A stretch of DNA of 64,000 nt. Source: Malacoraja senta (taxonomy: Eukaryota). Positions 39,826 to 53,074 of this stretch are shown in pieces (the stretch's first letter is position 1; the number at the start of each line of letters is the position of its first letter). The position numbers and the translations under genes are program-made. The DNA is taken from NCBI GenBank assembly GCA_038087875.1, contig CM075989.1, positions 8,370,001 through 8,434,000 on the forward strand. The letters run 5' to 3'. The notes beneath the pieces were generated by a model. It did not search any database and was not told where the DNA came from. It worked only from the letters and a program-made list of their open reading frames with translations.

Positions 39826-39879
39826 GGGGTGGAAGATTGCAACCTTCACGTGGTCCTCCCTGTTTCGACGAATGCAATC
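39826..39879 (+). ncRNA. HDV/CPEB3-like self-cleaving ribozyme (best-paired copy)
   Basis: P1 GGGGUGG/CCUCCCU (G1-U wobble, one U-U), P2 GAUUGCA/UGCAAUC (7/7), P3 ACC/GGU, L3 UUCACGU, P1.1 G, minimal P4 U-UUCG-A, J4/2 CGAA. Confidence 0.8.
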
Positions 39880-39936
39880 AACCCGGCGTGCACAATCAAA
39901 TAAGATCAAATAGAACAAGTTGTCCTAGAAGAAGAA
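39826..39936 (+). mobile_element. Ribozyme-headed short retroposon, copy 1
   Basis: HDV-like fold at 39826-39879; (aga)n tail; degenerate TSD cctatatcac / cctctatcac; ~30-nt deletion in the 3' half. Confidence 0.8.
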
Positions 39937-40479
39937 TCCTCTATCACTTTGCTGAGATACCAACAGATTTTTGGCTCTTGTGTGGCCATACCCTAAAGTC
40001 TTCATCAGGAAAGGCTAAAAGACTGTCCGTTAGCATGAGGTGCCTTGAAGTTGGCTGCAGAGCAAGTTAACTCCTGCCCCAGAACTTGGCATTGGTTTAT
40101 TATTGTCCTGTGTACCAAGGTACAGTGAAAAGCTTTTGTTTGTGTGCAATTCTGTTCAATCAAGTACAAACAAGACATACACAAGTGCAACAAGCTGTGC
40201 AAAAAGAAAAATACCAGAGTACAGAATATATTTCCACAGCATTGTAGCCTAACAATTACATTTTTTTTTAAACTCCAGCATCTGCAACAGGTTGGAAGAT
40301 CAGGACTACACACTAATTTATGGGAGGACCATTCAATATTCTGATACAGAGGAGATGTAACCTGGAACCACTTCAATTTGCCTATTGCCACATTAGGTCA
40401 GCAGCTGCTATTTTACTGCCTCTCCACTCTGCTCTGGGCTGTCTGGATAAGAGGAACACCTACTTCAGGCTGCTGTTCA

Positions 40480-40960
40480 TCAACTACAGTCCACATTGAA
40501 TACTATCATCCCTTCCAAACTCATCAGCAAGTTCCAAAACCTGGGCCCCTGCATCTCCCTGGGCATTATCTGGATCCTTGACTACCTCAATGGCAGACCG
40601 CGATCCTCGAGTGTGGATAGGTAACAACATTTCCACCTCTCTGACATAAGTGCATCTCAGGGCGACATGTGTAGCCACTCTGCTCTACTCTTTTTACGCC
40701 CATTATTGAGTAAGCACAGCTTCAGTGTCATCTACAAATTCGCCACCATTCGCCACTGCTGCAGGCCGAAATCACGGGTATTGAGGAGTCAGTGTACAGG
40801 AGAGAGACAGAACATCTGGTTGAATGGTACCACATCAACAACCTGACGTTCAATGTCGACAATACCAAGGAAGTAATCGTTGACCGGAAAGGGAAGGTTG
40901 GGAGAACACGTACCAGCTTTCATAAGTGGGTCGATGTGAAGAGAGTTAGCAGCTTCTACT
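40480..40960 (+). mobile_element. Decayed Rex1/Babar RT fragment
   Basis: YRRETEHLVEWYHINNLTFNVDNTKEVIVD (ORF 40792-40995). Confidence 0.7.
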
Positions 40961-41137
40961 TGGTATTGGATTCTTATTTGGTATTCGATTATTAGTGTCA
41001 CATGTACTGAGATATAGTGAAAAACTTCCTTTTTTTGTCCTTTCCTGTCAAGAGGCAGCAGTGTTATTCATAGTGGTAGACACACAAAATTGCAAATATG
41101 AAGGTAGTTTAAATAAATTATTAACAAATAAATTATT

Positions 41138-41440
41138 GGGCAGCACTGTGGCGCAGCTGGTAGAGCCACTGCCACACAATGTCAGAGATCCAGGTTTGAT
41201 CCTGACCTTGGGCACAGTCTGTGCAGAATTTCAATGTTCTCCGAATGACCGTGAGTGTTTCCTCCAGGTGCTCCGGTTCCTCCCACATCCTAAAGACGTG
41301 TGGATTTGTAGGTTAATTGGCCTCTGTATATTACCCCTGGTTTGTAGGCAGTGAGAAAGTGGCATAAGATTGAACCATTGTCAACGGGTGGTTGATGGGC
41401 GGCATGGTCCAAAGGACCTGTTTCCATGCTGTATCTCGAA
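41138..41440 (+). mobile_element. HE1-like tRNA-derived SINE
   Basis: A box gtggcgcagctggtaga, B-box-like ggtttgatcc, typical body. Confidence 0.75.
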
Positions 41441-42414
41441 AAGAAACTTAAAAAGTATTGGTTGGTGATATCAAGTAAATTTTCAAAAGCTAGTTGATTA
41501 CCAAAGTCAATTTTATTTCTATAGTACATTTTAAAACAACTCTTGTTGACTAAAGTGCTTTACATCAGTGCAGGTACTAACATGCTACATACAATGGTAC
41601 ATAGATCTACCAATACATACATACATACATACATGCAGCGCTCCCTCAGAGGACCTCAAGAAACGCTTGTGAGTAGAAATAAGTTTTAAGTCTAGACTTA
41701 AAGGAGTTGATGGAGGGGGCAGTTCTGATGAGAAGAGGGATGCTGTTCCACAGTCTAGGTGCTGGGATAATGGGTTTTGTTGGCAGCCTCGAATGGCGTT
41801 AACACCAGCAAGTTTGGGATGTGCACACTGACACAAAGCTCTGAACTTGCTGCCATGATCCACCCTGATTTCCCACCAGTCACTGTAGACCAGGGACGTA
41901 TTGGAATTCCCCACTACTCATCGAGAATATCCTATCAAATCCACCACCAGCTTCAAACGCATTGATTTGAATGGAGATATTAGCTACAAAAAAAGTAAAG
42001 GAAGCGCAAGTGACATTGTTCCAAATATTTGTATTTTTAGTAATGTTTTTAAATATTTAGGGCTTTAGTTGATTTATTTTTCATAACATTTTAATAATTT
42101 AAACACTTTAATTATTTAGAAGTATTTTTAGCTGAGTTTATTTTTAATTATATTTTAATAATTTAAACATATTTTAATTGTTTATTTAAAGTTTAATGCT
42201 TTTTAAATGTTTTTGAATATCAGGAACATTGAAAACCTTGAGAGCTTTGGCAAATTTCAAAGCAGGAGGTGGGGGGTTCCTGTCCAGCAAAGGAGCTTTA
42301 TTTATGTGTGTTCTTAACTATCCTTTATACATATCTCTGTTTTACACACAAGTTTTTCCTGCTACTCAGGGGCTTGCTGCCTGGTTCTAGAATGCTCTCT
42401 GTCAGCACAATTAG

Positions 42415-50582: not shown

Positions 50583-51475
50583 GGTGCAAAAGTACTTTAA
50601 AAAAATAAAAAATTGAGGTCAGGTAAGGGGGGATGATAGTTGAAGAGTTGGTATGTCCTATTTACGTGATGCTCAAAAAAAAACATTTGTTTCTCTTTTT
50701 TTCTCTTTCTCTTTTCTTTTCTTAGGGCCTATTTCTTAACTCTTTTTCTTTTTGTTTTTAATTTCGCTCTTATAGGGTCTTCGTCCTTTTTTGTTGTTAC
50801 ATTTTCTACACTTTTCTACACTTACACTTTTTCCTTCACTTTCTTCTTTCTTTCAATCTTTTCTTTTTCTAGTGTAAAAAAATAAATAAAGGGAGTACAT
50901 TAATTGTAAGAAGATATAAATGACGAGTATTAATGTATGTGGTTGTAATGTAATGTACTTCTAATAAATAAAAATAAAAAAAATAAAAAAAGAAAATCTT
51001 GCAACAATTGGTCTTTCTGTCACCAATCTAAAGTCTAGTGGATTGGTTCATTAATGAACTGCAATTGGAGCTGGCAGCTAAACTCCAACATAAAAGCAGC
51101 TTTAAATCTTTTTATCGTGTAAGGTGTAATAGTATTAAAGGTCACTCATTTCTGATCATAGAACAGATTCAGATTAATTTATTGTCACGTGCATCAGGGT
51201 GCAACATATTTCTTCATATGAAGCTCATAAGCAGTTTATGGTTACAATAGATACAATAATAAATATAACAGCAAATGCAAAGTAGCTAAATGATGTAAAA
51301 ATTGCAGTGTAATCTGAAGTAGTGCAAAAATGTTTGCTCTGCCATACAATTACAGCCGATACAATTTTCTCGCACTTGCCCTATGCCATTGATGTCCTCA
51401 TTGAACACAAATTTAATACTCAACAATAAAAGTTTCATTAGTCCCAAGATAGTCTTTTACATTTGACAGCAGTTT

Positions 51476-51493
51476 GGGGGGGGGGGGGGGGGG
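51476..51493. repeat. Poly-G run
   Basis: About 18 consecutive G. Confidence 0.8.
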
Positions 51494-51679
51494 AAATGCT
51501 TCCTAACTAAAGTGCCTTTGAAATGGTTGTGCTTTTAATTTTAATATTGTCTCACCGCCACCCTTCCTCATTCCTGATTCTCCCAATCAAGAAAACATTT
51601 TCTCATTATCAGTGGTCCTTTCTGTCTAAAGAATGTGAGAAGCAACATGGAAGGGTATTGATTTGAGTCTTATTGTCTC

Positions 51680-51945
51680 TACTCATTCTCACCTAACACA
51701 CAGCTAACAATGGCCTGTTTCCTTTAACATCGTTACTTTTTTGCATAACATTCATTCATTTGTATCTATATCTCTCTACATCACCATCTATATCTCTCGT
51801 TTTCCTTTACCTTGACTCTCAGTCTGAAAAAAAGTCTCGACCCGAAATGTCACCTATTCCTTTTCTCCAGAGATGCTGTCTGACTTACTCCAGCTTTTTG
51901 TGTCTATCTTTGGTTTAAACCAGCATCCACAGTTCCCTGCTACAT
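51680..51945 (+). mobile_element. Penelope 3' UTR/pLTR fragment
   Basis: Matches 28330-28595; flanking duplication atggaa(g/a)ggtatt; hammerhead core mutated. Confidence 0.75.
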
Positions 51946-52971
51946 ATGGAAAGGTATTATCCAGGTCATTTTATATACCATGTACATTAGAGAATCTACC
52001 CTCTCTGGCTGCTTTCTTTCAGTGAGTATGAGCCAAGAAATAGCTTCATTCTTGGATCCGGCAGTTTATCCATGCACCCCAGGAGCTGAGGTTGATTATA
52101 AGTTGATACTAAATTCTAACCTGCAAGTTTTATTCCCTCCCAAAAATCTGAACTGTGAAATCATACTGAGAATAAATAGTGACCTATTTGAACTCCAAGA
52201 TCAGCCATCACAAAATAATCAATGTAATTCTGTTAAGCATCAATGCAAAAAGCCACCAAAGTTAAATTTCTGGTTAACTCTCACTTGTTAAGATCACATG
52301 TATTGTTAAGGAATCGTGAAATCAATTGTAAACTAAAAAGCTATTGTCAGGGTTATCTGCCCAACAATTTGTTGCTAAATTCCCCTCATTTAACATGGGT
52401 ATTTAACCACTAATATTAGGCAGTATCATTTTAATGTGTACGCTAAATATCTAGCCTTACTAAGTAACGACCTCTCTAGGCTGTAGTATCTTAAGAAATT
52501 CATAGTTTCTTCATATATGAAAGAGATATGATGATCATGCAGAAAGACTGTAAAAGACTGGCCTTGTTAAACAAATTCATACAGCAGCAGGCAAAGCTGA
52601 ATCAGGGCCAATGGCCAAAGTACAGAGATAAGGTTGGCACTTCTCCAATGCTTGCCGTCTCCAGGAATTCAAAATCATTTCAATGCTGCTTTGAGCAGAC
52701 CATTGAGAAATATTATTGGAGCAATAAAAAGAATGTCTTCTCATTTTCTTTGATCTCTTTAGTTATTACAAATATTGGAGATGGCAAAAGAGACTGGTTA
52801 ATTGGGTGGGCTGTTTGGAGATGAGAGGTGATCTGGCACGCAAGCCAACAGATTTGGCAGCAGTCATAATGCAGGATGTGGTTAAAGAACAGGAGAGAAT
52901 GTGTGATTAATCGAGACTCATTGGATACTTGGAAGTCCAGAGCAGCAATGACAATTATTTATTATAAGTTA

Positions 52972-53074
52972 GGGGTGGGAGTTTGCAATCAACCCGGTGT
53001 GCACAATCAAATAAGATCAAATAAAACAAGTTGTCCGACAACTTTAGGCTGTGCACGCCATACGCAAGAAGAAG
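52972..53074 (+). mobile_element. Ribozyme-headed short retroposon, copy 3 (core deleted)
   Basis: Starts GGGGTGG and jumps to tgcaatcaacccgg; same 3' half and (aag)n tail; degenerate TSD attataagtta / attataggtaa. Confidence 0.8.

Follow-up and report, generated by a model that had tools for sequence, protein, structure and literature searches.

How does a retroposon of ~140 nt without an open reading frame (ORF) come to begin at the same base in each of its copies? The question is raised by a 64,000-nt stretch of the genome of Malacoraja senta (NCBI GenBank assembly GCA_038087875.1, contig CM075989.1, positions 8,370,001 to 8,434,000 of the forward strand; hereafter the window), in which an initial annotation, made from the letters alone, had described three dispersed copies of a short element that start at the same G directly after a target-site duplication (TSD), end in (AAG)n and open with a compact motif of the hepatitis delta virus (HDV)/CPEB3 ribozyme type. 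Our analysis indicates that the element is probably a ribozyme-headed, ORF-less retroposon with its cleavage site at the first nucleotide and with a structured module and a microsatellite at its 3' end. Judged from its sequence, it most likely sets its 5' end by cutting itself free of host transcripts.

Three copies of one element and their ribozyme-type head

Sequence reading, pattern searches and blastn agreed that the window holds three copies and no more, each of them on the plus strand (Table 1), and bore out what had been said of their ends: in all three the first base is the same G right after the TSD and the last part is (GAA)n. The probe patterns used for the element gave no chance match in 100 shuffles. 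The copies are 96-97% identical, indicating that the family is young, and none of them contains an internal run of four or more T. With TSDs of 9-11 bp, a (GAA)n tail and dispersed copies whose flanks are unrelated, the element has the hallmarks of a non-LTR retroposon mobilized by target-primed reverse transcription.

Table 1. Coordinates of the copies, their parts, the two other retroelements and the related ribozymes (window coordinates, or those of the contig named).
Feature	Coordinates	Strand	Remarks
Copy 1	39826-39936	+	Full 54-nt head; ~29 nt of the 3' body gone
Copy 1, 5' TSD	39817-39825	+	CTATATCAC; 8/9 positions agree with 39939-39947
Copy 1, 3' TSD	39939-39947	+	CTCTATCAC
Copy 1, ribozyme head	39826-39879	+	54 nt; HDV-type Rfam matches, helix parse and descriptor
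Copy 1, body and (GAA)3 tail	39880-39936	+	Missing ~29 nt included the 3' strand of the long stem
Copy 2	44383-44525	+	Full length
Copy 2, 5' TSD	44374-44382	+	CAATACCCT; identical to 44526-44534, 9 bp perfect
Copy 2, 3' TSD	44526-44534	+	CAATACCCT
Copy 2, ribozyme head	44383-44436	+	C44 is 44426; P2 weakened by G14A and U48G
Copy 2, structured 3' module	44437-44512	+	Folding test
Copy 2, (AAG)n microsatellite tail	44512-44525	+	Sequence reading
Copy 3	52972-53074	+	Begins at G1; ribozyme core deleted; body and tail complete
Copy 3, 5' TSD	52961-52971	+	ATTATAAGTTA; 9/11 positions agree with 53075-53085
Copy 3, 3' TSD	53075-53085	+	ATTATAGGTAA
L1-like long interspersed element (LINE)	44747-50989	+	Near full length, 6.2 kb; between copies 2 and 3
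5'-truncated LINE fragment	53928 to ~54950	+	C-terminal part of reverse transcriptase (FADDTKL ... LEYCV) and 3' untranslated region
Ribozyme head, metagenome contig L001	854-908	-	55 nt
Ribozyme head, metagenome contig L002	598-652	+	55 nt
Theta-type ribozyme, L005 (Bacilli metagenome-assembled genome)	1682-1737	-	Abuts the 3' end of a CUA-anticodon (amber) suppressor tRNA
Theta-type ribozyme, L011 (Mollicutes metagenome-assembled genome)	2631-2684	-	Abuts the 3' end of tRNA-Glu

The head is a complete HDV/CPEB3-type motif without P4, and it lies in register with the first base of the element. Numbered from that G as position 1, it comprises P1 (1-7 with 30-36, GGGGUGG/CCGCCCU, 7 bp, opening with the cleavage-site wobble G1.U36), J1/2 (AA), P2 (10-16 with 48-54, GAUUGCA/UGCAAUC, 7 bp), P3 (17-19 with 27-29, ACC/GGU, 3 bp) and L3 (UUCACGU, which supplies U20, C22 and G25). 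P1.1 can form between G37-U38 and C22 and U21, of which G37 can pair with C22 and the second pair would be U.U. A 5-nt stub, UUCGA (U39-A43), takes the place of the P4 helix and is followed by J4/2, C44-G-A-A, in which C44 is the putative catalytic C. Checked base by base, the helix assignments onto the HDV double pseudoknot that had been proposed in the initial annotation held, as did its placement of the catalytic C at C39869, which is C44 of copy 1, and its match of L3 to the CPEB3 loop, which is identical to the consensus of the CPEB3 model. The defining HDV-like features (P1, P2, P3/L3/P1.1 and a catalytic C within C-N-R-A) are thus all present except P4. The minimal or theta subclass can do without P4, and a head that lacks it accordingly belongs there and is not excluded from the HDV-like ribozymes.

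The base-by-base parse gave 6/7 pairs in P1 (mismatch U5.U32) and 7/7 in P2 for copy 1, and 7/7 in P1 (with U5.G32) and 5/7 in P2 for copy 2. Matched contigs from public sequencing runs (described below) show T at position 48 in essentially all cases, indicating that U48G of copy 2 is private, and we infer the same for its G14A. At position 32, where the initial consensus had R, the same contigs show G with A as the minor base. The family consensus head would accordingly be a fully paired ribozyme, with the P1 and P2 pairing of the earlier consensus retained. A nested minimum-free-energy fold of the head (z = +1.26) was discarded, as it is meaningless as a test of a fold that is a pseudoknot. 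Copy 3 lacks 35 nt of the head between two TGCAA repeats that correspond to the strands of P2, and with them P3, L3, the 3' strand of P1 and C44. The deletion (within 52972-52990) is bounded exactly by these repeats, as if the P2 helix had caused slippage or a template switch, or as if the repeats had served as microhomology for the deletion.

When 101 nt spanning the head of copy 1 were scanned by cmscan with relaxed settings, only three families matched: HDV_ribozyme (19.4 bits; gathering threshold 50), CPEB3_ribozyme (RF00622; 16.5 bits, threshold 35, E = 0.025 in this 101-nt search) and HDV-F-prausnitzii (12.2 bits; threshold 44). The alignments span the whole models with the P4 region deleted, P1 is in register with G39826, and model position 1 falls at or beside that base. 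Copy 2 gave the same picture with one family. The comparison with Rfam HDV and CPEB3 models that had been proposed thus returned HDV-type families alone and at full length, albeit with every score below gathering. As a control, the tRNA-adjacent theta ribozymes L005 and L011 reached only 18.6-23.1 bits against a gathering threshold of 44, indicating that a low Rfam score is the cost of lacking P4 and not evidence against the head.

We then wrote a descriptor in which P1 has at least 6/7 pairs and begins with G, P3 has 3 bp, L3 fits N-Y-C-N-C-G-N, P1 is followed by G, J4/2 reads C-N-R-A and P2 provides 6 bp. It matched copy 1 alone in the window and nothing in 200 first-order randomizations of the window on both strands (~25.6 Mb). 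ARAGORN found no tRNA-like head and no tRNA in the window, and the relaxed Rfam scan returned HDV-type models only, in line with the earlier statement that a tRNA, 5S or 7SL head is lacking. In the strict sense, which calls for a tRNA, 5S, 7SL or snRNA head with an internal RNA polymerase III (Pol III) promoter, the element is not a short interspersed element (SINE).

Abundance, variants and related ribozymes

Sequencing runs from at least nine organisms, of DNA as well as of RNA, contain 31-mers of the element. The evidence from these public runs consists of assembled (Logan) contigs, in which copy numbers from contig depth are not quantitative; matched contigs numbered 11,500-17,400 per DNA run (four other organisms) and 150-1012 per RNA run (four RNA runs), in agreement with the expectation of very many genomic copies. 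Hundreds of unrelated flanks occur among them. The 5' edge at 44382/44383 was marked by entries of 100-190 contigs each in two DNA runs (X2 and X14) and of ~20 contigs in each of two RNA runs, and the agreement of the flank consensus there was only ~0.35, indicating that the flanks are unrelated and the 5' end is uniform. The 3' edge lies at 44517-44525, often running on as GAAGAAG. Many matched pieces begin exactly at 44397, which fits a consensus that differs from the A of copy 2 at 44396.

Head variants that reach at least 4% all leave the fold intact. In P1 these are C31U, which keeps the pair with G6 as G.U, and G32A, which turns U5.G into U5-A; outside the helices they are C41U and G42A in the stub and G45A and G45U in J4/2. 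G45 is the sole J4/2 position that is free in HDV-like ribozymes, and the only J4/2 variants in the family are CUAA and CAAA. C24, G25 and C44 showed no variant of at least 4% in the four DNA runs, nor of at least 5% in the four RNA runs. The head holds four CpGs, and these three CpG positions of the catalytic core are the ones without a listed variant, which fits selection on source copies, albeit as weak evidence.

Searching metagenome contigs with a 23-base core pattern, we found homologous heads in two AT-rich, eukaryote-like contigs, L001 and L002 (JACSEG0100...; Table 1). Their P1, P3, L3, stub and spacing are the same as in the window element, whereas their P2 reads GAUGACA/UGUCAUC instead of GAUUGCA/UGCAAUC, that is, with two double compensatory changes; they have a U5-A32 pair and a CUAA J4/2, and the sequence downstream of their heads is unrelated to the window element. 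L001 and L002 are also homologous to each other over ~300 nt upstream of G1, indicating that the ribozyme is not at the 5' edge of their repeat, and a 54-nt module downstream of the ribozyme in L002 is found again 416 nt upstream. This repeat could be a tandem or composite ribozyme-bearing one.

With a looser key, the 18-nt core ACC-UUCACGU-GGU followed by N6 and UGUUU, bacterial and archaeal genomes gave 10 matches, two of which (L005 and L011) are complete 54-56-nt ribozymes abutting tRNA 3' ends, the signature of phage theta ribozymes; in the other eight there is no P1/P2, and we took them for chance or unrelated matches. Both complete ones sit within dense tRNA arrays, and their contigs are probably prophage or phage. 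In IMG/VR the same core gave 32 matches, of which 17 (16 unique) are complete ribozymes with perfect 7-bp P1 helices that differ from one another, and 15 lack P1/P2 and were likewise set aside. In seven IMG/VR contigs (L013, L019, L021, L027, L028, L029 and L040) the core without a P1/P2 complement stands in conserved phage sequence, in several of them twice, 117 nt apart; this may be a tandem repeat, perhaps a coding one.

Pair counts were pooled over 22 unique sequences, copies 1 and 2 included, by a structure-anchored parse; a MAFFT alignment misplaced a gap in P1 and J1/2 and was not used for them. P1 is paired in 152/154 cells, with three to five pair types at positions 2-7, and positions 2-6 of P2 are paired in 107/110 cells, so that the covariation suggested for checking is found at the level of the motif class. 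J4/2 is CUAA in 16 sequences, CUGA in three, CGAA in two and CAAA in one, and the G plus stub measures 6-8 nt. Pairing in P1/P2 splits the matches cleanly, with 7/7 in real ribozymes and at most 5/7 in the others.

Theta ribozymes are ~56-nt, P4-less, HDV-like ribozymes that cleave in vitro in a Mg2+-dependent manner, abolished by a C-to-U change (Kienbeck et al., 2024, PMC10879173). They sit at the 3' ends of phage tRNAs, which they mature; ~99% of the minimal forms were found in phages, and the eukaryotic genomes searched there gave no matches (PMC10879173). The window head shares with them the size of 54-56 nt, the lack of P4, the identical P3-L3-P3' (ACC UUCACGU GGU), the G after P1, a U-rich stub of 5-6 nt and the C-N-R-A J4/2. 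On the other hand, the theta class is defined by a cleavage site within 5 nt on either side of a tRNA 3' end in a phage genome, whereas the window head opens a TSD-flanked vertebrate retroposon. The completeness of the motif, together with the activity of the theta class, suggests that the head would cleave itself.

The 3' module, the predicted cycle and rival explanations

The 3' module of copy 2 consists of a 10-bp long-range stem (GGCGUGCACA/UGUGCACGCC, 44442-44505) around a 7-bp hairpin (44474-44490) and folds with -23 kcal/mol (z = -4.68; none of 200 shuffles folded as well); the (AAG)n run comes after it. 'Stringent' LINEs, and the elements that depend on them, usually carry a recognition signal of this kind, a stem-loop followed by a microsatellite. 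The module is thus a candidate recognition signal for a LINE reverse transcriptase, and this strongly structured tail agrees with the earlier proposal that the element borrows such an enzyme, the helper being presumed from the layout. At 44482, three contigs of one RNA run leave the element for a shared non-element sequence (agreement 0.94) that joins its last ~40 nt. It could be another repeat with the same terminal tail, possibly the 3' untranslated region of the parent LINE.

Two other LINEs lie in the window (Table 1). The L1-like LINE is flanked by a 16-bp TSD (AAGAAAATCTTGCAAC, at 44731-44746 and 50990-51005), contains ORF1 (44937-46007) and ORF2 (APE and reverse transcriptase, 46811-49831, with a frameshift after which the other frame runs on to 50582 with a zf-RVT domain), and ends in an A-rich tail. 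It inserted 222 bp downstream of copy 2. We rejected it as a partner, as its ends are unrelated, its tail is A-rich and it has no sequence in common with the element. The truncated fragment at 53928, which reads as CR1/L2-like by its reverse transcriptase motifs, was also rejected, having nothing in common with the tail of the element. The window further contains a run of ~18 G at 51476-51493 in otherwise unremarkable intergenic or intronic sequence.

The predicted cycle would begin with passive transcription of copies within host RNA polymerase II transcripts, on whose read-through the element would depend. The ribozyme, which needs no upstream sequence, would then cut just 5' of G1 and leave a precise 5' end. 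A helper reverse transcriptase of the stringent type may bind the 3' module and prime on the microsatellite at a nicked target, and the RNA would be copied up to G1, yielding full-length insertions with TSDs of 9-11 bp, which are the products that we observed.

Several observations weigh against this reading. Each of the three window copies is mutated in the ribozyme and none carries the intact consensus. Copy 3 has TSDs and the correct 5' end though its core is absent, implying either that its deletion followed insertion or that an element's own ribozyme is not always needed for the 5' end. P4 is absent and P1.1 amounts to one G-C pair plus U.U; a weak P1.1 and a missing P4 can each slow HDV-type ribozymes. 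No Rfam match reached its gathering threshold anywhere in the window. RNA contigs cross the 5' junction, and contigs spanning it occur in RNA and DNA runs alike, indicating that at least some copies are uncleaved or that the signal is pre-mRNA or DNA. The phage and metagenome-assembled sequences were retrieved with the core of this very element, leaving their P1/P2 pairing as the only independent feature. The pattern of head variants is suggestive at most, since the threshold lies near the neutral CpG decay of a young family and subfamily structure dominates (for example, C59U stands at 23-45% with its CpG partner unlisted). Lastly, the 64-kb window holds no LINE with either part of the element or with the same tail.

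Some of these observations would be expected if the head were a fossil, descended from the 5' ribozyme of a LINE, that lost cleavage along with P4 and has kept its sequence only through the youth of the family; on that view the copies would all begin alike through complete reverse transcription of an RNA that gets its start in some other way. The missing P4, the weak P1.1, the 5' end of copy 3 and the RNA contigs across the junction all suit such a history, and among copies just 3-4% diverged conservation alone says little. Nevertheless, we consider it unlikely, as an experimentally active class of P4-less ribozymes is identical to the head in core, in stub length and in J4/2, the two compensatory double changes that kept P2 in L001 and L002 imply selection on the fold, and the propagated head variants are all structure-neutral. 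We give still less weight to a head whose chief role is other than cleavage, be it to promote transcription from within the element or, as a 5' structure, to protect the RNA or bind protein. There are precedents, in that Pr77/L1TcRz of L1Tc is both promoter and ribozyme (PMC3383444) and the R2 ribozyme fold gives cap-like protection to RNA and guides 5' junction formation, and the high copy number of a promoterless 140-nt element is easier to understand if it transcribes itself. We identified no promoter motif in the element, however, such a role is compatible with cleavage in any case, and conservation falls on just those features that belong to catalysis (G1.U, L3, C44 and AA). Strongly disfavored, and in our view hardly credible, is the idea that the element is a common Pol III SINE, with a head derived from some unrecognized small RNA and a likeness to HDV that is due to chance. 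It would account for the shortness, the high copy number and the lack of internal T runs, but it is contradicted by the ARAGORN result, which speaks equally against a tRNA-derived promoter, by the absence of the full motif from 25.6 Mb of randomized sequence, by the restriction of Rfam matches to HDV-type models and by a core identical to that of real ribozymes with covarying stems.

Known relatives and significance

We therefore retain the self-processing retroposon as the preferred reading. The most fitting name for the element is ribozyme-headed bipartite non-autonomous LINE derivative, akin to SIDEs or NARTc, and it should not be termed a Pol III SINE. The 'SINE family' of the initial annotation was apt insofar as it meant a short, dispersed, non-autonomous retroposon; as a label it is loose, since the parts are arranged as in bipartite non-autonomous LINEs or SIDEs.

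Insects and trypanosomes already provide examples of LINEs with an HDV-like ribozyme at the 5' end and of small non-autonomous elements that have retained it. The R2 SIDEs of Drosophila (Eickbush and Eickbush, 2012, PMC3414825) are likewise ORF-less, with a 5' HDV-like ribozyme and a LINE-recognized 3' end, and are processed from a co-transcript and mobilized in trans (PMC3414825). They are, however, rare, specific to ribosomal DNA and equipped with a full-size R2 ribozyme, whereas the window family is dispersed, extremely abundant, vertebrate and headed by a 54-nt P4-less motif. The L1Tc/ingi derivatives NARTc, RIME and SIDER share with it a dispersed, abundant, non-autonomous state and an HDV-like 5' ribozyme, their first ~77 nt being the Pr77/L1TcRz ribozyme that they have in common with the parent LINE (PMC3185411, PMC4035085). 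These differ in being trypanosomatid, in that Pr77 is also a promoter, and in having a larger ribozyme of unlike sequence.

Ingi and Vingi are sister clades. Bipartite ORF-less derivatives arise from Vingi, RTE, Ingi and R2, Vingi-1_EE being reported to have many that join its 5' and 3' parts, and Vingi is not among the six clades listed with 5' ribozymes (Kojima, 2018, PMC5786205). The window element resembles the bipartite Vingi and RTE derivatives in being short; those consist of a LINE 5' end and 3' end alone, as the window element would too. Our literature search turned up no ribozyme reported from elasmobranchs or from Vingi elements, and the initial annotation likewise knew of none from cartilaginous fish. 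Whereas minimal P4-less HDV-like ribozymes have so far been placed almost wholly in phages, this family would be a vertebrate, genome-wide and very high-copy carrier of one.

The mammalian CPEB3 ribozyme (RF00622) has in common with the window head the L3 UUCACGU, the GGGG start of P1, CCCUGU after P1 and CGAAU in J4/2, and differs in being single-copy and intronic, with a 16-nt P4 and another P2 and P3. By sequence comparison the window head is nearest to CPEB3 in L3 and the junctions, but it falls outside the CPEB3 family as Rfam defines it. It is conceivable, though we hold it only tentatively and think it improbable, that the core ACC-UUCACGU-GGU...C-N-A-A is ancient and common to vertebrate retroelements and phage theta ribozymes, not convergent, and that the head of this retroposon and the related ribozyme of its presumed Vingi-type parent belong to the lineage from which the mammalian CPEB3 ribozyme was exapted. 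With this family there would be a concrete lineage to consider as the source of that ribozyme, whose origin is unexplained; were the idea true, the single-copy, 'memory-linked' CPEB3 ribozyme of mammals would be the domesticated 5' end of a retroposon.

If the preferred reading is true, the head is a natural 54-nt eukaryotic self-processing module, of relevance to engineered retrotransposon vectors that use LINE 5' and 3' untranslated region modules, and its thousands of copies constitute a large natural mutagenesis set for structure-function work. In the fishes that carry the family, self-cleavage at thousands of sites within introns could alter how pre-mRNAs are processed.

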